A stretch of 60,391 nucleotides of DNA, filler included, from Sluysia triapertura (lineage: Eukaryota): the NCBI GenBank assembly GCA_046118255.1. It is 5 parts of 5 records of this genome, joined end to end, with 100 filler letters (N's around TTAATTAATTAA, not from the genome) between each part and the next. Parts side by side here need not be neighbours in the genome. Positions count along the whole stretch, not along the records: positions 11,399 to 25,712 come from JBJNIA010263281.1; 4 more parts are not named here. One strand, 5' to 3'. Numbering within the stretch: the stretch's first letter is position 1; every line of letters begins with the position of its first letter. The translations under genes and the position numbers were made by a program. Of this stretch, positions 2,113 to 58,964 are shown piece by piece. The notes beneath the pieces are model-generated. The model had not been told where the DNA came from. It did no database searches and saw nothing but the letters and a program-made list of their open reading frames with translations.

Positions 2113-3437
2113 GTCATTTTTATTACTTTTCATTTTCTTAAAATATATAGGCAAATTAAATAAATCAAAAAATATAAAAAACACTAAAAACTAACGATAA
2201 AATCTAACACTTTTAATCTTTATATGCTTTTAATGCCTTTACTTTTATTCAGTATGAACAAGACAAACACACAAGCACGTATCATAAATAACATAACACC
2301 ATTCTATAATGGAATTGACCGATTTTGTGGCAATAACGAAACACCCTGCCATTTTCGGGTCTCAAATATCACGCTGTAGTGGTCAGCATCTGTAACCTCA
2401 ATTTAAAACTCATAACCACAAATTCTCACTTCATTAAAATACCATTTTCTCAATAGTCATACCTCTATTTTACAACTACATTATCATAAATACCACAAAA
2501 CAACATTCCACAATCATAATACCTCACTAGCTCATATTCACCAACAAATTAATCTATACCTCAACCATCTCCAACTTAATAAACTTCAACATCCAGTGAA
2601 AACAATCCACAACATTTACCCACTAAATACTTCATCAAACAAGTCACAATCACAACATAAACTTCACAAATCACAAACATAATAACATCTAAACAACGCT
2701 AACAACTACTTCAGAAACATAGACCATTTACACTTAAATCTTTAATCAATCACATCAACTTAAACTCATTTTATATATACATGTACATCAAAAACAAATA
2801 TTCTTAACATTACAAATTTGTTCTGCAATCATCATTTAAAATAAAAATAACTCCAACCTTTTCAACAAACATTTCAAACTTAAATCAAATGTATAAATCT
2901 TGTTTCAATTTATAAAGCTTCAATAAGTTATAATAAGTTATAATAATTTATGCCAACACTTTTCATTTTGATTACAACTTCAATCATCACAAGTTTCAAA
3001 ACAAATTTCAAATAACTTTAAAGATTTTATTATTTCACTGTGAAGCAACAACTACAATTGATACATTGCATATATCTTATTGTCGTTGCTCCTTCACAAT
3101 ACATTGGTTTCTTTTTATTTTATGTCATTTCAATATGTCAGAAATTAAGATAAAGACAAAGAAAGATCTTGTATTTCAAAGTTTTAAAAGATTTAAAGAT
3201 TTTATGCGAATTTTGTTTGAGTAATAATAATAATAGTAATAATAATAATAGTGTTGTTTTTATTGTTATTATTGTTATTACTAACATTGTACTAATAAAT
3301 AATTAACAAACTATTTTGTCAAAACAGTCACCACCGTCATCGGTATTAATTCTAGTCATCAAAAATGTCAGTAAAACGACATCATAGATGACGGTAGTTA
3401 GGACATCAATAATCATGAAAATTAATTTTACTGCCAA

Positions 3438-11398: not shown

Positions 11399-11471
<73 letters not shown>

Positions 11472-13402
11472 AACGCACAAACAATAATTATTATCAATAC
11501 AGCTAAAGAGATTAACGTTACAAGAGCAATGCACAAAATATATGTTGTATCCATGGGTATATAGATATCACTTAATAATTATAAAATAAACAAACATAAA
11601 TGTTCTATTTAAAATAGTAAGTAAATAGTACTATAGAATAAAATCTACTGTCTTTAGCACATTTCAAATGTGTGAGACATTTTTTCACAGAACTCCTTTC
11701 AAAGAAAATTTGATGAAAAAATGAATTGGATACTCAATTACTTAAATTATCAAATATTTAAATCATCATTTAAAAGCCAAAAATATTTCGATATAAATCT
11801 ATCAATGAAATTATTCAAATTTACAAACTATCTCAAATTATTTGATACGCTTATTTTTTCATTATTTTGTTCCATATATTTCTGAATGCTTTTTTGTTGA
11901 ATTAAATTTAATAATGCACTTTAAATATACATTATTTAGGTTAGATTTATGTAAAACTAATTATGCACTTGTAGTGTCTGCATATCCGGTAGCTCGAAAG
12001 TTGTGGTTGCAAACTATAAAATGTTAATGTCGAGGATTTTACAAAATTTATTAGTTTAATTGCCTGGAAGAATTTTATTTCAATTTTTTACGTTATAAAC
12101 ATTTATTAATTTGTGGTCTAACTTAAAAATTACTTTAAAAACGTTTACTTTAAGGCCTTTAACTATGACGAATAAAATTAACTTGAACAGGGAAATTAAA
12201 TTTAAAACGAATTTTATAAATAAGGCACATAAATACCTTTGCACATAGTAGATGAATAAATAGATATGTTAGTGAAATGTCTATTCCAAATAATTGGGCA
12301 TCTTTTACATGCAAAGCAGTAATGATCTTCCATATTAAATTATTAATTGCATTGGTTGGAATAAAAACCTTTAGGAAATGTTAATATATTTATAAATCAT
12401 ATTGTTTAATGTATCAAATCATAGCATAACAGTTGGTTGAGTATGAGATAATTGTTGTATCTAAAAAATTCGCTTGAATCAAGATCTCTAATTAGTATTT
12501 ATCTACAACACTAAAACTTTTTGTAGTCTGATAAAAATGTTTTGTTGATTTCAATATTAACAACGAAAAAAGATCCAGTTGACGCATTAAATTTACATTT
12601 CAAACTAGCTTGTCTTGATGCCCGTGATAAATTGTCGAATCAGCATATTCAATATAAGTACTTGTTTATTAAGTACGAGTTTGTCTGCGTTAGTATTACA
12701 AATAATAACTATCAATGTTATATAAATTATCATAATTAATTGCACAAATGATCAACTACATAAATATTGATCTCTTTAAATTCAAGATGTTCTTACGAAA
12801 AAATTGGTGAAACTAAACTCTCACAATTTTGTATTTCTAATAAATTTTCGTCTTAGATATATAACTAAAAGTGTATATTAAACATCGTTTGGTGTGTTCA
12901 CTTTTCGATTTAATCATAAATCAGTGCTAATTGATCAATAATAACTGCAATAATTTTAAGAGCTTCAAATAAATTTCGCAATTCGCGTTTACAAAAATGA
13001 TACGACTAAATCTAGTAAAGTTTGTATATATATAAACAGAATTTGACTACTACTAATCGTTTATTTTGATCAATATCGATATGTTCTGTAATTGAAATGT
13101 AGCTATCTCTAATTGAGATAATCTATCTTGCTTATTTTTCGCTAAATCTGATTTTATGTAACTTTAAATGTTAGAATTATTTTTANNNNNNNNNNNNNNN
13201 NNNNNNNNNNNNNNNNNNNNNNNNNNNNNNNNNNNNNNNNNNNNNNNNNNNNNNNNNNNNNNNNNNNNNNNNNNNNNNNNNNNNNNNNNNNNNNNNNNNN
13301 NNNNNNNNNNNNNNNNNNNNNNNNNNNNNNNNNNNNNNNNAATTTAATAATTGTTTGAATATTATGCAAGTCGAACAATTTTAATCTATATAGTTATTAA
13401 AA

Positions 13403-13642
13403 TATGCAATTAACAAAGACGTTACTGCCGAAAAGTTAGACATAATTTTGAAATCTGCAAAAATAGATTTTCTTTTCGTATCTTTACTTACAATGTATGC
13501 CAGATTATTAGAAGAGAATTTTAAACCGATATTAGTGAACGTTACGGTTGTTTCCGCTCTAGTTCCGGCAACAGTAGCAGTTGAAAGTGTATCTGTTGCA
13601 GTAAGCGCACCTACAGTTCAAGAAGAAAAGCCTTTGGAAAAG
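13403..13642 (+). pseudogene. RPLP1: 60S acidic ribosomal protein P1 fragment
   Basis: VTAEKLDIILKSAKID...MYARLLE..ILVNV followed by an Ala/Val/Pro-rich hinge and EEK. N-terminus has stops; the C-terminal DDDMGFGLFD motif is absent. Confidence 0.7.
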
Positions 13643-13685
13643 ATCTTTAACGAGATTATGTTGCAAAACAAAAGTAAATTTAAAT

Positions 13686-13827
13686 TTAAACGAAATTAAG
13701 ATCAAACTAGATCATGATATCAAAAGTATGATGATAAGCGCAGAAGCACCGATATTGCTTGCAAAAATGCCCGAGTCATTTATGAGAGAAACATCACTAT
13801 GTACGTCGAGTCATACAGAACGTGATG
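13686..13827 (+). pseudogene. NFYC: NF-YC histone-fold fragment
   Basis: IKIKLDHDIKSMMISAEAPILLAKMPESFMRETSLCTSSHTE resembles NF-YC [24 protein letters not shown]...FITELTLRAWIHTE. Confidence 0.8.
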
Positions 13828-13876
13828 GTAAGGCAATTATGTCTCATTTAATTTTATCAATTTAGGTGTTAGTTTT

Positions 13877-14959
13877 ATGTCAAAAAGCATGTCGAAGTCA
13901 GAAGTTGATAATGGTCAAACGTTGATATCTTTAAGCGATCCAAGAAGATTTGAACACCAAGCCACAGTGCGAGAAGACGTCTTAACCAAAACTGTACAGT
14001 ATTTTGCTATTACTCGTTTTTTTATTACTATTTTTTACGTCAAAAAACATTTTAAATTTATTATGTTAATGTCGGAAAGAGTTGTAAGTGCCAAAATTAA
14101 AGCAATATGTTATGCAAGATTATGTAGTTATCCGAGTTTATGTGAATCTTTCGATGTAGACCAAGATGTTCATGAACTATTAATCGATAAACATAAGTAT
14201 CACGATAATTATATACATAAAATAGTTGTAATTGATATTTTATCAAAACGTTATTTTAAAAAAGGTCATAGCTTACCTATATTAAATGATTTTCAAACTG
14301 TTTCTAAAGATGTCAATAAAGTCATAAAATATGATAGTGTAAACGTAAAGGCATTTTTTACCTTTAAAGAATGCATTAAAGGTTTTGAGTTAGATTTTAA
14401 AAATGCAACTCTATTTTGTAATTGTGCTATACCTTATATTAAATTAAATGATTTTCAAATTGATTTTAAAGAGTGTAATAAAGTTATAGAACGTGATAGT
14501 ATAGACGTTAAGGCATTTTTTAGACGAGCTCTATGTAAGGAAGTCCTTTCAATGCTTGATAGAGCTATTGATGATTTCAAAATTGTATTGATACTAGAAC
14601 CCGAATATAAAACTGCGAGGTTGATCCTTGATGAACTAAGTCTGCGAGGTGTCGTTGATTCGGTGTTCTATGATAATACGTTAGACTATTCACTTTTATT
14701 ATTCATCTTTGACTATTTCAAATTTGTTCATTTTTCTGAATTAATAACAATTAAAAAATTATTAATGAACCCCTTGGTACATGATGTTGTATTTTTAACT
14801 TTTTGCATTCATGTTAGATTTTTGATTCAATATATCAATTTTAGTTATTATTCAAAATTCATTTTGTTGAGCAACTATAATTTTAACAAATATATTTTTT
14901 TAAAAGACCTTAAGTCTTATTTTTCATTAATCTCCGCCACAGCCCGGCCATTACAGTAA
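13877..14959 (+). CDS. 360-aa chimeric ORF containing co-chaperone-type TPR repeats (RPAP3/SPAG1/TOMM34-like)
   Basis: NATLFCNCAIPYIKLNDF...ECNKVIERDSIDVKAFFRRALCKEVL...AIDDFKIVLILEPEYK. One TPR segment is internally duplicated. Confidence 0.6.
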   Translation: MSKSMSKSEVDNGQTLISLSDPRRFEHQATVREDVLTKTVQYFAITRFFITIFYVKKHFKFIMLMSERVVSAKIKAICYARLCSYPSLCESFDVDQDVHELLIDKHKYHDNYIHKIVVIDILSKRYFKKGHSLPILNDFQTVSKDVNKVIKYDSVNVKAFFTFKECIKGFELDFKNATLFCNCAIPYIKLNDFQIDFKECNKVIERDSIDVKAFFRRALCKEVLSMLDRAIDDFKIVLILEPEYKTARLILDELSLRGVVDSVFYDNTLDYSLLLFIFDYFKFVHFSELITIKKLLMNPLVHDVVFLTFCIHVRFLIQYINFSYYSKFILLSNYNFNKYIFLKDLKSYFSLISATARPLQ

Positions 14960-17148
14960 TAGTATCGCGCATCTATTCGTAATGATGACATTTATGATGT
15001 TTGATTAAAAAATTTTAATTCTAGTTTAACTTTACTTTATCAAAGACTTTGTTTTAATCAAGAAACTTATTTTTAAAGTAATTCTTAAGAAACGTTTCCT
15101 GCTATTTAAGAAATTATCGCAAAATAATAAAAAAGTACAAAAATTAGTAAAAATATAAAGTTTTATTTTTACGAGGACATTGTAAACAGAAAGAAATTGA
15201 CAGTTGTGTTTCTACCCCATTCAAACTGTGCCAGGAAGCATAGAAAATCAGAATTATATTCATAATTTAATTTAATACCATTGTGGGAACAAATTTATAC
15301 TTTGATCTAACCGAAAAGTGCACATGAGCGAATACACACACAAACATATATACATTTTATGTATTAAATAAGATCATTTTGAAAAAAAACTGAAAAACTG
15401 ACCCAATACCAAGATCAAACGAAAACACCGCCATGACAAATCATATTATTATACGCATTATGTATATTGTAATAAAATTTGAGGCGTACTGAAACTTTAT
15501 TATCAAAATTTATAATTAAAATTGTGAGAATATTTCAAGTAGAATAAAGTATGATTTTAACATGAGTCCACCAACGTACTAGGTTTACCAGTTATGGCTA
15601 GCCGTTGGATATGTAGATCAACGATTTTTAAGTGAAGGTTAGAAAAACTGTCTAAAGTATGCGTGGTTCTGCTCTTCTTAACTTAACAATTATTGATTTT
15701 CGATTTTAGTAAGTTCTGGAGATATATAAGTTATCTTTAGTTTTCTAAATGATTAAAGCAATTATTTAACTGTAGAAATAAATAATTTATGAAGCATTTT
15801 ACGAAGATCCTATGAAAAGAATCTATGAAAATGATTTTACGGAATTAGACTTAAATTCTAATCGTTGAAATCGTTACTCTTCTGAAGATTTTATAATTAA
15901 AGCTATGAAATTTAACAATGACAAATAATTACTTGAAAAATTTATGAAGCAATAGGTAAATGAAGTTACAATTAAGAATATAATAAAATAAATAATTAAT
16001 GTACGAGGAATTAATTTAATTCCTGAATCAACAATATTTTAGTAAAGATTTTGCATAAGATCTATTATAAAATCTTTTTGAAAAGTAATTACAAAATAAG
16101 TTTAAGTATATTTTACGTGGATATGTCATACATCTGTGACGTATTATTTTGATTAAATCAGAATTTGTCAAATAGGATCCAGCAGATTAAATATCGCTCC
16201 GTAAAAAACTTTTGTTTTCTCAAGATTATGTTAAAGTCGCGCTTGTACCAATAACAATACTAAACTATTTGACAAATTCTGCGACTATTTATAGTCGTCT
16301 TAGCTGGCCTTGGCCATATTAAAACAAATTATTTTAATTAAAATTAAAAGAAATTATTTCATTAAAATTAAATTTAAATTTATTTATATTTAATTAGAAA
16401 TTTAGAAATCCAAATTTATATTTAATAATGTAAAAGTTTCTTACGTTAAAATTAATTTTTTTAATCCAAATAAATGAATAAAATTAGTTCTTCAAATTCA
16501 AATAAATAAAATAACACTGAATTATTACAAATGAATAAAATTATCAATAAAATCAATAGTAATCACATATAATTGAAGTCTGATATAAAGATAAAAGTCA
16601 TTGAACATTGATTTACAATAAAAGATTAAAATCGTAATTATAAAGTTGTAATCATTAATTCACAAAATAATAATAATTAATTGAAGTTTGCTATTGATTG
16701 TTTTGGAAAATAAAATAGTGGATGTCAGTAATTTGTTTTGTTAATGCCACCTCAATCATTTGTTGTAAGTACAGTGGTAATCATTGTATTTCATCAATAG
16801 TCATTCGACTCATTTATCTAATGAATTACCTACTAATTTGCTCATTGTCAATTTCACGTTTTACTTCGCGTATCGTTAAAAATTTCTACAATAAAATTAC
16901 ATTGCAATGTCAATGACTTAGAGTTGGCTCTCAAATTTATAATCCTGATCAGTTTTGCAGTACTATCGACAAATGGGTGATTTGAAGCAGATAATAACTT
17001 TGATTTAACTGTTAGCTTCATATTTTATTTTTCAATTATAGTTTCGTACTGTTTCACTCCTTTTATCAAGAATACGAACGACATAATCGAATGTAAACTT
17101 AATTATGTCGTTTTATTATGCACGCTATTATACATTTTATTACACATA

Positions 17149-17336
17149 CATGTAATTGGTGGTACACGTAATAGTAGCTATGATGATTCAAAAAATGCTT
17201 ACATAAATGGTTGTCATGATCACATAAATTATCGTTTTGAAGAAGTAAAAGCACTAGTTAAAGGTAGTTTTAGTCAAGTTGTAATGCCTTATGATCACAA
17301 ATGTAATTCTTACGTTGCTTTAAATTGATACGTAAT
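17149..17336 (+). pseudogene. DYRK2/3-class kinase fragment (DH box to subdomain II)
   Basis: GGTRNSSYDDSKNAYINGCHDHINYRFEEVKALVKGSFSQVVMPYDHKCNSYVAL, then a frameshift into LIRN. Glycine loop is degenerate. Confidence 0.85.
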
Positions 17337-18281
17337 TATGTCGTTTTATTATTATTTGTTTTATTGTACATGCTATCGAAAACGATTAATGTTTCAATTT
17401 ATGATTACAAATTTTTACCATTCTTTCAAGTAAACTTTCTCTTCCTTTGTATCACAAGACTTAGTTTTAATTTACTAAGAAGTATTTTTCTCATGTCATA
17501 CAGATTCATATTATTCGCTGCACGTTTATAATGGCTAGAGACGTTTTTATCCGATAAACTAAAAATAGAATATCATTGTTTTACAAATCGCAGTGTACCG
17601 ATAACGTTGCTTGTTTTTATAGAAATTATAAAATATTATAAATAATTATATTATATTTCAAAATCATTCTTCTAAAGATGGTGACGTTATTAAAGCATGG
17701 AAAAATGTAGAATTTACTTTTTCATTGAATTATATACTTGCTCGGTCAATGACCATACATGAGTGAATATTTCCCGGCAGCTATGATTGGAATACACTTA
17801 TTAATTATATTAAACATTTAATAACATTAATCATTATTATTATTTATATTTTTCCAATTGTTATGTTGAAAAATAAATTCAACCTTTGTTATTTTTTAAA
17901 TTTGTGATTTACAAAAGGCTTTAAACCTAATTTATTAATTGTTTTAAAGTTCAATTTAAATTGTTTTTTGTTAAGTAGATTTTTTAACTTTTTTAATAAA
18001 AATTTAAAAACAAAGTTTAATATTTCGAATAATTGCTATAAAAGAAAAGAAATAAACAAAAATAATTAGAAATTTCTAATATTAAAAGATAAAAAGCCTT
18101 TCCCACTTTAATCTTGCATGGAAAAACTGGAACGAGAAGGAAAACTTGATTCACTTTCTAAAACGACGCTTGGATTGACTGGAAACTCTGAATTTTAAAT
18201 ATTGCCGAACAAAGCAATTGACAAGATGGCTACTACGCGTAAAAATGAATCGTGAATTTACTAATGATTTCTTTATGATTA

Positions 18282-18439
18282 TGTTGGGGTAAATAGGCCT
18301 AAAGTGCCATGATGGTAATATTGACTATACTAAACTAAAATTGTTAGACAAGGCTGATAGCTCAGTAGTAGAGCATCGAACTGCATAACGAGAAGTTCCG
18401 GGTTCGATCCCCGATCAGTCCATTTTACGAAATCTAACA
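18282..18439 (+). mobile_element. 158-bp solo-LTR-like element with embedded tRNA-derived unit (18351-18422), copy 1
   Basis: TGTTGG...CTAACA ends, 4-bp TSD ATTA/ATTA, A box TAGCTCAGTAGT and B box GGTTCGATCC. Confidence 0.85.
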
Positions 18440-18499
18440 ATTAGATGTAGGTATTCATACAAATCCACAGCCAATCATAGGCGAGTAGAAATCTATAAT

Positions 18500-18524
18500 G
18501 TTCTAGAATATTCTAGAAACTTCT
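18500..18524. promoter_or_regulatory. Five-unit heat shock element, with a CCAAT box at 18471
   Basis: gTTCtaGAAtaTTCtaGAAacTTCt, five perfectly alternating nGAAn units. Confidence 0.6.
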
Positions 18525-19259
18525 TTTCTTTTTTTAGTAAGCACTTTTCGTTTTTAGAAAATAAGATATCTTTTGTGGAAAATAAATATTTTTAAAGTGA
18601 TTTTAAAGACAAATAAATAATTTTAGAGCTTTTTATATGATTTTAAAGAGTTGTGATGACAACTTAACAGATTGATTGAGTGTATTATATTACTTAGAGT
18701 GAATATTATATTAAATTTGGATTTGGTATTAATTAAATGGGAAAATAATTTTTTAGATTTTGACTTATAAGATACGGAACTTAAGTTATTTGCACAGGGT
18801 TATATTTTACGTATTCAAAGTCGATTTTAATGGTGACATAATCAGAAAAGTGTTATGATCTGCTATCACTTAATATGACTACCAATCATACTTATATAGT
18901 TTACACAAGAATGTGACATTATATTTTATGTCATAATAAAATCCTGCAATCACAATTGCTTTTGATAATTTAAAAGTTCGCCTGTGATCCAAGTGTTACA
19001 ATTAAGGATTCATCCACGGGATTTAAATGTTAAATAATCAAGAGAGGTCGAATAATTAAATGCAGCAGTATTTTAACTTCATAAATACTGTGTAGTTCTT
19101 GGAGTCAAGTAAAATGAAGCACTCAAATGCAATAATCTTACAAACTTTCAAATATTATGTAGTTTTCCATGCGAATTTTGGCTGAGTTTTTGTTAACTCT
19201 TTAGGATTATTTTTTAGCTTCAGCTAGTTTAATTTAAAATAACGTATTTAAGACCTTTT

Positions 19260-19441
19260 TGTTAGACTTTAATAAATGGACTGATGTTAGGCTCAATAAA
19301 CTCGGGCCTTCTAATCTCACAGCTGTGCAGTTCGATGTTCTGGCCAATAAGCTATCGGTCCTGTCTAACATTTTTATTTTATTTTAGTCAATAATACTAT
19401 CACTATTCTAAGTGGCACTTTTTGAGGTCTATACCTCAACA
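19260..19441 (-). mobile_element. tRNA-carrying solo-LTR-like element, diverged copy 3
   Basis: Colinear with copies 1 and 2, both TG/CA ends present, TTTT/TTTT flanks (low-complexity TSD). Confidence 0.75.
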
Positions 19442-21559
19442 TTTTTATTTTATCATCGTATTTAAACCTATGTGAAAAGATTTTAAAAGTTGACTTATTT
19501 TGCAAGTTTAAAGCTGCATAATTTTGAATATATTTTGAATCCTATTGAAAAGAATTTCACTAATATTTCTAAAGTTAATAGAATTCAATCTTTTTTCGGA
19601 GGGGGAGTAATCAAACTTTTAATTTTGCTTCCATTCAAATGTGTATTGTGGCGAACCCAAGATCAAATTACAATAACAATGACAAACAAACACCAACACA
19701 AATTAACACATCTTACATAAACAAGTTATTAAATAAACTACAACATACTAAACCACTATAAAATACATATAAAACACAAGCACAGTTGTAATAATATCAT
19801 ATTTTGTTAAATCTTACCTGTTATTACTATTATTATTTTTATATTGTTAATGAGCATTGTTATTGGTATTGGCATTGTTGTTTATGCTGGTGTTTATAGT
19901 GTGATGACGTAATGATTGATGACATATTAATATTATTATTGACGTTTTAATATTATTATTGATTATTGATGATTTATTATTAGTAACAACTGTTGTGTAC
20001 ATTATTATTGTTTTATTTATTGATTTTAATAATACTATTTATATTTTTAACATAATTATAACAATTGATTTACATTTGGAATATAATATTATTTTTGATT
20101 TTCGGAAAATAAACTAGCGTAAGTGTTTATTAATTTATAAAATAAATAGTTTTTATATCATGTTTTAAACTATTTCGTTTTTTTTAAATTAAGTAGTTTT
20201 TTATATATGTCGTTTTGTTTTAAATTAATTCGGTCAAAGACATTACAAAAATACACAAATGCATATGAAAAAAATTTACAGCTCACACAAAAAAATTTAA
20301 AACTACAATAGAGTTTCGTTGGTCAAGGACACATATTGTCAAATCTAAGGAAAACGTCTCCTCACTTGATTTTTTAAACTACAATAGAGTTTCACTGTAC
20401 AATTTCAAGAAACACTTCTTCTCACTTGACAAAGAACACCCAATTGATCAAAAACTTTTGTTTAATTTAAAATACACTTAAAATAAAATTATTTTTCACT
20501 TAGTTAAATTGAATTTAAAATTAATCCACTAAATTCTATTTAAGCGGCAAAATAGTTATTGATATTATATACGTGTACAGTCATTCGTTCTATAATTTGT
20601 CTTATGTAATTTTGAATACTGTCTGATAATATACTTTAAGATTTTACTTTTCTTTGTAGAGATAAAATAATTGTTTTTCTGCTATAGCATAAAAAGGCTA
20701 TAAAATTGAGTAATTTCGTTGTACATAAATATTGCATGACATATTTTAAAAACTTCATATACTACTACGTAACTTTTTTCATCAGAATTAATTAATGATT
20801 GGTGTCAATCGCAGTCACTATCAACTTATGCTGCTTTGTACATAAAAGACAAGTTGTGCAGTTCAAAGACGGTCATTTAGTGTAAGTGATAAAATTTACT
20901 CAACTTCTTTTATATTTTGGGTTTCACGTTTTATGTTATACATTTAATATAAGATTTCCGTTTTATTATGTTTATTTAGTTAAATCAGTTTCAATTCAAT
21001 TTTTGACATTTTACTGTTTACACGGTTTGAAGGGCTTTAATGTCTTTAAAACTTTAATTAACTTTATGTAAAAATTAAAACCAAAGTTTAAACGATTTAA
21101 AAATTAAACGATTTAAACTTTCTAAAGTTAATAAATTATGAAACAAAACAGGCTTAATGCCTTTAAAAATTTTAAAACATATAAACAACAAAATTTGAAA
21201 ACTTTTTATTAAAGAGCAATATAAGAATTAAAAACATAAAATAACATAAATCATTGTTTTTATGAATAAAGAAAATAGACTATCCGGTAGCATTTCCATT
21301 GATAAACGTTTTTGATCATTTTGTTTTGTAATTAAGTTTAATAACATAGTTGAATTTATCATTGAAACAAATTATTTAGTTAATTTTGTCTAACTTAGAA
21401 ATATTGATGTTTTCGGCTATAGTTAATAATTAGTATTTTTTTTTATTTTATTTATTTTATTACTCTTGCAATTACAGGTTAGAAGATACAGTGACTTATT
21501 ATAACGAAATCAATGTAATCATCTGAGCTCTGGTTTTTTGCAATATAATTAAAATCTGG

Positions 21560-22230
21560 AAATAAATCCCATATGCATTTTGCAAACTAACATCAGCTTC
21601 AGATTGTCGATTTATTTCATATTGCACAGATCTTTCTGCTTGATAAGTGACATCTAAATCACGATTCTGATCGCCGAATTGCTGTACAATTTGTGAATAT
21701 TGTTTTTCCAATTCCATCGACAACTTAATTTCTGCATAAGTTTCATTAATATTATTGATGACAACAAAAGTTACAATGACAGCGGTGGATTCGGAATAGT
21801 TTTCATATTTCTGAATCCTCGAATTTTAAATATGGAAACACTATACCAGAGGAGTTTCCAATACAAGCCAATAATTGAGTTACATAAGTAGTTGTTTCAA
21901 AGCTATATTCATCATAAAATAATGTAAAGGTGATTCGATAAAGCAATTATTATTATCTGGAGCGAGAGGTTTGAAATAATAATCTTTAAAATAATAATCT
22001 TATCGAAATAATCTTTATTCTGACGTGTTGTACTTTCCAGTGCACTCCACAACAACACTGGATCCGTTATTATTTGTGCTGGCATCTTCCCACAGCTTAA
22101 CAAACCAGCTACTGGAATTGGAGTAGTTATGCATAATACTACATTTTTAGCCACAAGTTTGTCTCATTTATAAAAACATATAATTATTATTGATTCTACT
22201 TAAGCTCCGATACGATTGTAAAGGCAGATG
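21560..22230 (-). pseudogene. NPC1: Niemann-Pick C1 fragment (middle luminal domain to start of sterol-sensing domain)
   Basis: ITDPVLLWSALESTTRQNKDYFD, FKPLAPDNNNCFIESPLHYF, CIGNSSGIVFP, STAVIVTFVV, VTYQAERSVQYEINRQSEADV, interrupted by stops, frameshifts and deletions. Confidence 0.85.
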
Positions 22231-23348
22231 GAAATTCTAGCCGTTTTAATCAATAGTATTGGGACTGGTGAAAGATAAGGGTAGATATGTAGGTTCAAGA
22301 CTCAGGATGACAGAATAAGGTGAACATTATGATGAATTATAATAATAAGATAAGCACATGAAATACTTGAATCATGATAAAACTATGAGAAAAACGAATA
22401 AGTAACCTTTTACAGGGTTTTTATTTGTTAAAATACTAAAGTACATATGTTAATTAACTTAATTAAAATTTATCTAATTTGGTAACTCAATAAAAATGTT
22501 TGTCCATGATATAATGATATTTAATTTAGTGCATAATGTTGAGTTTTATTATTGGTTTTAATGATGAAGTATTGCGAAGCACGTCAACATAAATAATGTA
22601 AATTTTAGTTATTTTAATTAGTTTTTGTAATTTGTAATTAAAGTTGAATATGTTCCGATGTTTAAATATTGATAAAGTAAATATCAAATTGATGCTTATA
22701 AAGATACTAATTCATGTTATTAAAATTGACATGCGACGTACAGTTGACGCACAACGTATTAATGCATAATACTCCTATGAGAAATAGATTTATTATTTCA
22801 TAAATTTTATTTTAAAATTTAATAGCAATGTAACGATGAATTTAACTTGTGATTAGGTGATATGAAGAAGATAAGGGGATTGTTGACCACAAATCCTATT
22901 ATCTTTAGATAATTAAAATTAGATTGAATTTCAGTATAGAAGGAAATTGCTGTCAAATTTTCAATCAGTAAAATTAGTCCGGTTAATACCGCCTAAAAAA
23001 GAACAGACAGCTTTAATTTCCGTCTTGTTCAATTCCTAATTTTAATTTCCTACAGAATCCAGGCCCTCTCGCTGCGCAGTTAGATGAATGGAAAACTTTT
23101 ATTTTACAACAAATACAAGTCTGTACATTAATAGGATATATAATCAAATAATATGGTATAATAGATATTAACATAGGAATCACACTAAGTTAATGTAACA
23201 AAGCTGGTAATGATAAGCTTGTCCATTTAAGAAATAGTTGTTCGTGCTGCTGATGATGAGGAAAATGTTAATGTTGAAGTTTAGAGCCACAAGCATACCA
23301 CTGATAAGTCAGAAACATACTATAAACATATATTGAAATGAGAGAAAG

Positions 23349-23505
23349 TGTTAGACTTCGTAAAATGGACTGACCGGGGATCGAACCCGGGACCATCGTC
23401 CGCGCAGTCGATGCTCTACCACTGAGCTATCAGCCCCGTCTAACAATTTCATTTTTATTAAATTCAATTTTACCAAATGGCACTTTTGGGCCTTTTACCC
23501 CAACA
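23349..23505 (-). mobile_element. 157-bp solo-LTR-like element with embedded tRNA-Ala-like unit (23436-23366), copy 2 (best preserved)
   Basis: TG...CA ends, 4-bp TSD AAAG/AAAG, paired acceptor, D and T stems, intact A and B boxes. Confidence 0.88.
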
Positions 23506-23574
23506 AAAGTATGATATTAAATCACAGATATACAATTAAGTGGGTGAAATAAAGAAACGAGAAATAAAGAACCT

Positions 23575-23661
23575 ATTGAGCTATCAGCCCTAACAATTTT
23601 GTTTTAGTATAGTCAATTACAGTATCATTACTCTATGCCACTGTAGGCTTGTATCCCAACA
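23575..23661 (-). mobile_element. Partial (5' half) copy of the tRNA-carrying LTR-like family
   Basis: TGAGCTATCAGCCC-TAACAATTT...TAGTCAAT...TGCCACT...AGGC...CCCAACA matches copies 1 and 2. Confidence 0.75.
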
Positions 23662-24803
23662 TAAAGATGAACTTTTTACCGTTGTGTCATCTTTGATCAT
23701 AAGTGGATATTTATCTGAGTTTATAATTTCATTATAATAATTTCATTATAATTAGAATTTTTTAGATGAATTAAAGTTTTTTGAAAAACTTAATTAGACA
23801 CTAATTAAACTTATTATTATTAGCTTATATAGTTACAGGAACGCACTCTTTACGACACATGTTTACTGTAACCGAAAAAAATTTTTTTGCTTAGGTTGTA
23901 TTAGAAAAATAAATAGCACTACAGCAAGTGTTGCGATGTGTGTACGCTTAATATAAGTATGGCCAAATGTTTTGGAATTTTATATAAACATTATAACCTT
24001 TATTCATTGCTTATATATCCAACTATACTGTTAAATTTTACTTTATTAAAATATAAATTTCATTTTGTATATTTAATCGACTAAAGAGGATTGTGAGGTA
24101 AAGTTTTAAGAAATAAAGTTCTAAGTGAATCAGAAAAATGAAGTCAGAGGTTTTAAATCATAAGATTTTCCATCTTAAACTCAACTTCTTAGATACAATT
24201 CATTTTAATAAGATACTCAACGTAATTAAATAAATTAGATTAAATATAGATAAATTAGGACTACCAAGTTTAATAATTTTGATCGGATTTTATTAATAGA
24301 TTAATATTCATAGAAATCTGAAATAGAAGAGGCCACAAAAAGAGTAAAGACTAATTTAATTTTATACTAATTTAATTTTACAATTGCAAACCTAACAAAA
24401 TAATTTGAAAAATTCTAAAAACTATTGAGCCTATAGATTTTAAATTTAAAAAATTACGCAATATAAAACCAATTGCGATGCAACCAAAATTATAATATCC
24501 CAAAAACAGTTTGAGTTCCACATAATTTAACATATTTACAATCAAGACTAAATATTGAATCTTTTCGGACCAAAATGGATATTACATTTAATAACTGTTG
24601 CAAAAAGCAGTGGCATATTGTAGTTAACTAGCTGAATTAATTTTTCAGTAGCTTTTAAAGTTAGAGATTTTGTTTTTGTTAAAAAATAACCTCATAAAAT
24701 GTATTTTGTAATATTGAAACGAAACAAATTATAAAAGAACATGATATAAAATTATATTGAAGCTCTAATAAAGTCTCCATTTCAAACGGAAATTAAAAAT
24801 ACA

Positions 24804-24871
<68 letters not shown>

Positions 24872-24876
24872 TCGAA

Positions 24877-25712
24877 TTATTTACAATATCTTGATTTAAG
24901 AAGATATTTAATATCATCCAATGTCAGTCCAGTTAAATTAGGCCTATAATCATCAAATATATCACTACTAATTTCGTCGATTACTTTATTCAAATTAGAC
25001 TTAATTTCATTTATATCTAAAGACATTTCTGTGGCCAATTTTCCGTCCAAAAAAAAATTCTGTTCTTCTTCAGGTTTAGACGATAGCCATTTTCTTAAGG
25101 ATTCGTCAGTGCAATAGTTCAAATTAACACAATTGTTTAATATTCGTAAAATTATTCCATATTTTTTAATAAATTCCATCGAAAAAGTGCGGCTAGTAAT
25201 TGGAGATAATAAAGACTGAAATGAAAGGTTAGAATTAGATAAACATAATAAGTAGAACGTAGCTAACATATTATCATGTTGTCTAGTAAATGAAATAGAA
25301 TGAATCAATATTCGACAGTAAACTGCGATTTTCTTACTCATTTTGATTTCTTCTAAAACACAATTTAAATACGTCCATTTAATATCTTCAAGTTGAAAAT
25401 TTAAGCAATTCAACTGATTAAAAATTTCACTGACGATTTTAAAAGACAATATGGCAATCAGAGGCCAAGTTATTTGTAAATCTGGTATTAAATTTTGCAA
25501 AATACGTTGAAAATATAGTTTAGCGTCTTCCAATGTTTGTGCACATATGGTTTCATGGATTTTTATTTGTCTTTCTTCAGCATTACATTCAGCAATAGAT
25601 TTGATTTGTTGATCAATTTCTTCTGACGTTAATTTGGAAATCTTAGGCAATTCTTTCACTGAATCATCTTTCACAATGAGATTTATTTTCAATTTGGATG
25701 AATTATTTGAAT
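24877..25712 (-). CDS. Orphan ORF or terminal exon of at least 271 aa, 5' end runs toward an assembly gap
   Basis: Long stop-free frame with protein-like composition; no domain recognised. Confidence 0.55.
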
Positions 25713-58913: not shown

Positions 58914-58964
58914 TGATAGACTTCATAAAATGGACTGACCAGCAATCGAGTCCGGGCCTTCTCG
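58914..58964 (-). mobile_element. Partial (3' end) copy of the tRNA-carrying LTR-like family
   Basis: TGATAGACTTCATAAAATGGACTGACC...ATCGA..CCGGG matches the start of copy 2. Confidence 0.75.

Follow-up and report, generated by a model that had tools for sequence, protein, structure and literature searches.

Repeats with an internal tRNA-like unit in a Sluysia triapertura assembly as probable long terminal repeats of a Helenus-type miniature retrotransposon

What kind of mobile element leaves short repeats that begin and end like a long terminal repeat (LTR) and carry a tRNA-like unit inside? The question is raised by positions 18282-23661 of a stretch of 60,391 nucleotides, filler included, joined from five parts of the Sluysia triapertura assembly GCA_046118255.1 (the whole stretch is hereafter called the window). 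An earlier note on this DNA, made from the sequence alone, had proposed solo LTRs of a miniature non-autonomous retroelement using an internal RNA polymerase III (Pol III) promoter. We followed the repeats through the window's own assembly (G000; 619 Mb in 263,945 contigs), and loci fetched from it are given below by L-numbers. The repeats are very probably LTRs of a Helenus-type terminal-repeat retrotransposon in miniature (TRIM; 'TRIMp3'), a non-coding element of about 407 bp with a Pol III-type tRNA module. The proposal of a miniature retroelement was borne out by a two-LTR form having a primer-binding site (PBS) as well as a polypurine tract (PPT), which was found in many copies.

The 157-bp repeat and its two-LTR form

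The three full copies that had been described at 18282-18439, 19260-19441 and 23349-23505 were confirmed, each with its own target-site duplication (TSD). Copy 1 (18282-18439, plus strand; TSD ATTA at 18278-18281 and 18440-18443) belongs to an older subfamily, is 83% identical to copy 3 and stands as a solo LTR in the assembly. Copy 2 (19260-19441, minus strand, 182 bp; TSD TTTT on the plus strand at 19256-19259 and 19442-19445) is the most diverged window copy and carries small insertions, and copy 3 (23349-23505, minus strand; TSD AAAG on the plus strand at 23345-23348 and 23506-23509) belongs to a young subfamily. Every full copy starts with TGTTG(G/A)GG and finishes with (G/A)TCTAACA, and no A-rich or simple-repeat tail is present on the window copies. 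About 68 bp of the LTR lie upstream of the tRNA-like unit, which begins about 69 nt inside, close to the 70 nt given in the earlier note; TTTT follows the unit at once, and 13 nt then lead to the GTCTAACA end.

In copy 1 the tRNA-like unit occupies 18351-18422 (plus strand), with A and B boxes, 36.7 bits against the Rfam tRNA model and TTTT directly 3' at 18424-18427. The unit of copy 3, at 23366-23436 (minus strand), reaches 53.7 bits and is folded by ARAGORN into a cloverleaf labelled tRNA-???. Rfam scanning of the repeat returned tRNA matches only and no 5S rRNA match. ARAGORN gives the copy 3 unit an oversized, abnormal anticodon loop with a four-base 'anticodon', and such a unit is therefore not usable as a tRNA; the reading of the repeats as a cluster of true tRNA genes was rejected.

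Two incomplete copies lie in the same region, the place listed at 58914-58964 being outside the piece that was analysed. The one at 23575-23661 (minus strand), which had been listed as partial, is a 3'-truncated LTR covering LTR positions 1 to about 87 and breaking off within the D-arm of the tRNA-like unit. The other, listed with a 'perhaps' at 23056-23086, proved real but short: at 23055-23095 (minus strand) it runs from the anticodon arm to the T arm of the tRNA-like part of another subfamily, with 34 of 41 positions identical to the 5' LTR of L038 and a local score of 47, compared with a maximum of 34 among 500 shuffles. As a separate observation on the LTR, TGTTAGAC at positions 61-68, just 5' of the tRNA-like unit, forms a perfect inverted repeat with GTCTAACA, the 3' end of the LTR, at positions 150-157 (in the window, for example, at 23438-23445 and 23349-23356 on the minus strand). 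Old subfamilies keep the pair too, and it may be left over from an ancestral LTR of smaller length or from the event in which the tRNA module was inserted.

With copy 3 as query, at least 1614 first-look candidates were found genome-wide; its best 40 matches are full-length at 96-100% identity, and with at least 39 further copies in the genome it shares 96-98% identity. Tabulation of target sites, which the note had advised, gave an exact 4-bp TSD in 19 of the 35 full-length solo copies with readable flanks and TSDs of 5 or 6 bp in none of them, compared with 0-1 of 35 at 4 bp in the shifted-flank controls, an excess far beyond chance. The duplicated sequences are varied and AT-rich. An insertion could also be read from a paralogous pair of loci, two copies of a pogo-like transposase gene, of which L069 is empty (..ACGTTATTATAAAGG..) and L071 filled (..ACGTTATTAT, then the insert TGTTGGGG...GTCTAACA, then TTATAAAGG..), with TTAT duplicated around TGTTGG..CTAACA; this pair defines the insertion boundaries exactly to the base. 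The pogo/Tigger-like DDE transposase gene copies themselves lie on the minus strand at about 1000-440 in L069 and at 1270-1832 in L071, and contain the motif ..CGLTSYLQTGDIG...

Among the first loci, L014 already displayed two LTRs with a 95-bp internal region between them, and the same LTR-internal-LTR composite, with 93-95 bp between the LTRs, was found in L039, L040, L056, L033, L060, L086 and L038. The 95-bp internal region used as a query gave at least 1303 first-look candidates genome-wide, and in 30 fetched loci an LTR match stands beside the internal region on nearly every side that the contig covers. The internal region opens with a TT spacer followed by the PBS TGGTGAGCCC and closes, directly before TGTTGG, with a conserved tract ..GAATTGGGTGAGATA (also given as ..GGGTGAGATA), which we judge from its sequence to be the PPT. 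The whole element measures about 407 bp (LTR 157, internal region about 94, LTR 157) and is non-coding. Outer 4-bp TSDs flank five composites (L040 ATAT, L056 ATAA, L033 TACA, L060 TAAA, L039 ATTT(T)), and two other complete composites have no outer TSD. In six of eight elements the two LTRs of the pair are 88-94% identical (range over all eight, 80-94%), compared with a mean of 86% between elements, and subfamily-specific variants are common to both LTRs of one element, as expected if both were copied from one template.

These properties bear on whether the repeats are tRNA-derived short interspersed elements (SINEs) moved by a long interspersed element (LINE), an explanation to which we give a negligible probability. 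SINE2 elements resemble the repeat in having a tRNA-like Pol III head with A and B boxes, a high copy number (here 4937 exact occurrences in the assembly of a 21-mer from the LTR 3' end) and no tRNA function. SINEs, in contrast, start at the tRNA head and have a LINE-derived or A-rich tail and variable TSDs, none of which applies to the present element: all full copies have about 68 nt upstream of the tRNA-like unit, which would be missing from any single-unit Pol III transcript, the tail is absent, the TSD has one fixed length of 4 bp, the copies show two sharp ends and no series of 5' truncations, and the sole truncated window copy is cut at its 3' side. We saw neither a LINE with a common 3' end nor TSDs of variable length, and the two-LTR form exists. 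The note's own rejection of a SINE, made on the inset position of the tRNA-like unit and the lack of a tail, holds on the additional grounds of the TSDs, the sharp ends and the two-LTR form.

In the assembly, an exact 21-mer from the LTR 3' end occurs 4937 times, one across the LTR-PBS junction 211 times and one from the internal region 342 times, which suggests a predominance of solo LTRs like that in published families. Contigs of the assembly break at the repeat, many LTR ends and LTR-PBS junctions falling within the first or last 100 nt or so of contigs, and for this reason a solo LTR and a collapsed two-LTR element are not told apart for the window copies. The two-LTR copies that did assemble are older ones with diverged LTRs; where the LTRs of a young element are identical, the assembler may have collapsed or broken it. 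A large share of the LTR copies sit 50-80 nt from a contig end, and the repeat is a major cause of assembly fragmentation.

Primer tRNA and footprints of reverse transcription

A pattern anchored on the T-arm found a genuine tRNA-Trp(CCA) gene at L080:1450-1522. The complement of the 3' end of the mature tRNA, with CCA added, reads TGGTGAGCCCGACGTGATTCGAAC..., and the PBS matches it over 10 nt in the common copies, over exactly 18 nt in six copies (L081, L085, L086, L087, L089 and L091) and over 39 nt, CCA included, in L076. All nine genomic sites with a 16-nt tRNA-Trp PBS are directly preceded by an LTR of the window repeat. When the common internal region is set against the 39-nt complement, its first 34 nt agree at 29 positions and differ by two substitutions and short gaps, so that about one third of the internal region is a decayed copy (complement) of the tRNA-Trp primer. 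Two other patterns, built on the acceptor stem (GAGCCCA/TGGGCTCA and GGTGAGC/GCTCACC), found no tRNA, and the first of them matched the pogo-like transposase gene. That gene has 12 nt (GAGCCCACATAT) in common with the PBS region of the TRIM, which is most simply put down to chance.

The lengths of these matches are informative. CCA is not encoded in the tRNA gene and is added post-transcriptionally, so a complement that includes it was copied from the mature tRNA. Eighteen nucleotides are the classical stretch that retroviruses and LTR elements copy from a tRNA primer before the modified A58 halts the enzyme. The 39-nt copy in L076 stops just short of the nucleotide 3' of the anticodon, where modification is common. 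The locus itself (G000:C178197, minus strand, about 1662-1440) comprises an old, diverged 5' LTR, TT, the perfect 39-nt complement, about 40 nt and the PPT, without a 3' LTR, and looks like an ancestor-like state of the family's internal region.

Together, the PBS lengths and the CCA require reverse transcription, and they exclude a miniature inverted-repeat transposable element (MITE) moved by cut and paste. A Ginger-like or other DNA MITE with TGT..ACA ends, a 4-bp TSD and a tRNA gene present by chance was the alternative that the note had named should no two-LTR form exist, and the composites described above are that form. Ginger DNA transposons have TGT..ACA termini and a 4-bp TSD, and their transposase is related to integrase; the present repeat agrees with them in both respects, TGTTGG/CTAACA forming a short imperfect inverted repeat, to which the perfect inverted repeat between the internal TGTTAGAC (LTR 61-68) and GTCTAACA may be added. 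Short TG..CA inverted ends are, however, normal in LTRs. The units are direct repeats around an internal region with PBS and PPT, an LTR-PBS-PPT organisation that Ginger lacks together with any tRNA-primer footprint. A tRNA-Trp complement that has the non-templated CCA and breaks off after exactly 18 nt in six copies and after 39 nt in one is explained only by tRNA-primed reverse transcription. We therefore regard the MITE explanation as effectively refuted.

Pol III signature and the candidate Gypsy helper

On the sense strand, TTTT occurs three times in the bodies of 63 full-length LTRs, compared with 297 occurrences of AAAA, and not once in 32 internal regions, where T is the commonest base and the local background is 24 per kb; the TTTT right after the tRNA-like unit is kept in 63 of 63 LTRs. 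Across 31 diverged LTRs, conservation is 0.95 in the A-box/D-arm and 0.92 in the B-box/T-arm, compared with 0.83 in the U3 body and 0.80 in the anticodon arm. The 3' acceptor strand, the TTTT and both termini are also among the best-conserved parts, the termini being favoured by the requirement for a full-length BLAST match. This TTTT pattern fits Pol III transcription, short of proving it.

On such a model, R would correspond to the tRNA-like unit, U3 to the 68 nt upstream and U5 to the last 13 nt, and Pol III would initiate at the 5' LTR's tRNA-like unit. A productive RNA would have to read through the TTTT of the 5' LTR, as some transcripts presumably do, would then cross U5, PBS, internal region, PPT and U3, all without TTTT, and would end at the TTTT of the 3' LTR. 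A Ty3/Gypsy element would package this RNA in trans, with tRNA-Trp priming its reverse transcription and the Gypsy integrase inserting the product, and recombination between the LTRs would subsequently turn most copies into solo LTRs. We know of no test of either the transcription or the helpers of Helenus elements.

A candidate for the helper comes from L090 (G000:C158735, minus strand, 5554-3292), where an LTR and 17 nt of PBS run straight into a degenerate pol, in a frame-less fusion; the domains of this pol (RVT_1, RT_RNaseH_2 and Integrase_H2C2) make up the Ty3/Gypsy architecture. An aspartic-protease open reading frame (ORF) lies 3' of the integrase in this locus (2683-3285), an odd position. 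Members of the L090-type pol family are abundant in the assembly, where 2536 first-look candidates were found at 76-89% identity. In six other copies of this family the reverse transcriptase (RT) coding sequence runs on upstream of the junction point, and L090 is therefore a deletion or recombinant rather than the normal form.

It might still be supposed that an autonomous Ty3/Gypsy element is the owner of the tRNA-bearing LTR, with the form of about 407 bp as its deletion derivative. The joining of LTR and PBS to Gypsy RT, RNase H and integrase in L090 speaks for this, as does the window-type LTR in front of all nine 16-nt tRNA-Trp PBS sites. Against it, the L090 junction cuts into the RT, which continues normally upstream in the other copies of the family, and junctions of the L090 type make up one of the nine 16-nt PBS sites in the assembly. 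In one ordinary copy (L098), which has a gag-like sequence with a zinc knuckle, no Helenus LTR or PBS was found in the 3.85 kb upstream of the RT. Moreover, a Pol III unit could not transcribe an element of at least 5 kb that is rich in T runs. We consider an autonomous Gypsy origin of the LTR very unlikely, if somewhat less so than a SINE or a MITE.

Returning to a TRIM mobilised in trans, the L090-type Gypsy family is a candidate helper, not demonstrated, and the 4-bp TSD and the published link between animal Helenus families and Gypsy elements agree with a Gypsy helper. The note had called a Gypsy-type integrase established. The 4-bp TSD and the single LTR-PBS-Gypsy pol chimera fit such an integrase, which we infer rather than take as established.

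L090 is one of five loci (with L081, L082, L089 and L091) in which the tRNA match ends after 16-18 nt and the sequence beyond does not continue as the common internal region; in L091 the tRNA match resumes for six bases after a 1-nt gap. The partner in L081 is an abundant repeat of about 880 bp that also lies near LTRs in about 12 other loci. As a hypothesis, the five LTR-PBS junctions are possibly aberrant transfers of plus-strand strong-stop DNA. If they arose by aberrant strand transfer in a shared particle, the L090-type Gypsy would be the first helper of an animal Helenus to be identified by sequence. We advance only tentatively, and as possible rather than probable, the larger proposal that this is the first Helenus family known from Platyhelminthes and that it keeps unusually direct replication fossils, namely an internal region built from a 39-nt read-through copy of tRNA-Trp, a transcribed path purged of Pol III terminators, and junctions in five loci of the LTR with 16-18 nt of PBS, a unit equal to plus-strand strong-stop DNA, one of them with a Ty3/Gypsy RT as partner.

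Several points weigh against the main reading as a Helenus-type TRIM. An exact TSD is absent from 16 of the 35 solo copies, and the common PBS is just 10 nt long. The copies share descent, so that the depletion of TTTT reflects a few master sequences and not 63 independent tests. Pol III use, the start site and the read-through of the first TTTT are all inferred from sequence. The link with Gypsy comes from a single chimeric copy, and the ordinary copy in L098 has the Helenus ends nowhere in the 3.85 kb covered. Finally, the 'solo' status of young copies may be an artefact of the assembly.

Published relatives, the host and the surrounding sequence

Helenus elements, TRIMs that have a PBS and a PPT and whose LTR contains a tRNA-derived sequence, are described from six animal phyla, fungi and one plant, with Platyhelminthes not among the six; their TSDs are 4 bp in animal families and 5 bp in fungal and plant families, and animal families have PBS regions in common with Gypsy elements (Kojima 2024, Biology 13:119, PMC10886601). 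The present family agrees with them in every structural respect: a tRNA unit with A and B boxes in each LTR, PBS, PPT, no coding capacity and the 4-bp TSD of animal families. Its size (157 + about 94 + 157) is within the published animal range, Helenus-4_MiYe having 157/94/408, and tRNA-Trp is among the primers reported for animal families. It differs in its host, which groups with Platyhelminthes, in an internal region partly derived from the primer tRNA and in a copy recombined with Gypsy pol. Five diagnostic strings of the family were not found in the consensus file of Kojima 2024, in which strings split over line breaks could be missed, and on this comparison, made with that file alone, it is not one of the published Helenus families. 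The class is already known, and the present family is new and abundant, much as the earlier note had supposed.

The name that the note gave for the class, Ajax, from annelids and cnidarians, does not apply: the tRNA-bearing group is Helenus, and Ajax, known from two nemerteans, comprises TRIMs whose promoter is 5S rRNA and whose TSDs are 5 bp (PMC10886601). Its analogy with Cassandra is apt as to design, given that Ajax and Cassandra also have a Pol III promoter module in the LTR of a miniature LTR retrotransposon; in both the module is 5S rRNA and not tRNA, and the Ajax TSD is 5 bp.

In the literature consulted, no Helenus is reported from flatworms, and the family would add a phylum to the Helenus range if the host is a flatworm. 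Pfam yielded no useful match for two ORFs of the window, and a search for records encoding a window ORF found none. The HSP70 genes of G000, cytosolic and mitochondrial, are those of an animal; two homologue searches agreed on this without turning up proteins from the species itself, and a protein-cluster search with the mitochondrial gene gave bacterial DnaK-like clusters only. Their contigs, which have AT-rich flanks and fragments of the window LTR, belong to the same genome by these features. In a quick maximum-likelihood tree of mitochondrial HSP70, the query falls inside a flatworm clade (SH-aLRT, the Shimodaira-Hasegawa-like approximate likelihood ratio test, 99) as sister to Dugesia and one unnamed sequence (SH-aLRT 97). 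From this one gene and quick search, the host is likely, though not established, to be a flatworm, probably a free-living one. The assembly also contains four separate, near-full COX1 genes in which TGA encodes Trp (L061-L064, on G000 contigs C219470, C200653, C192378 and C243991); three of the contigs have 46-47% GC and one has 23% GC, which suggests that mitochondrial DNA of a second organism or nuclear copies are present in the assembly.

For experiments on Helenus, the family provides concrete starting points: its primer tRNA is defined, its terminator-free path predicts one specific Pol III transcript, and a Gypsy family is a candidate for its helper. It is also abundant, with about 5,000 exact LTR-end 21-mers, and has young copies 96-98% identical. 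In practical terms, its thousands of tRNA-like units inflate tRNA gene predictions and break short-read assemblies of G000.

The piece of the window that contains the repeats (11399-25712) has about 25% GC and bears long (TAA)n microsatellites at both ends (11399-11470 and 24803-24870). It also contains an ORF of 360 amino acids at 13877-14959 (plus strand), without a convincing Pfam match, inside which an 83-bp direct repeat of 82% identity recurs at a spacing of 162 bp (14278-14522).

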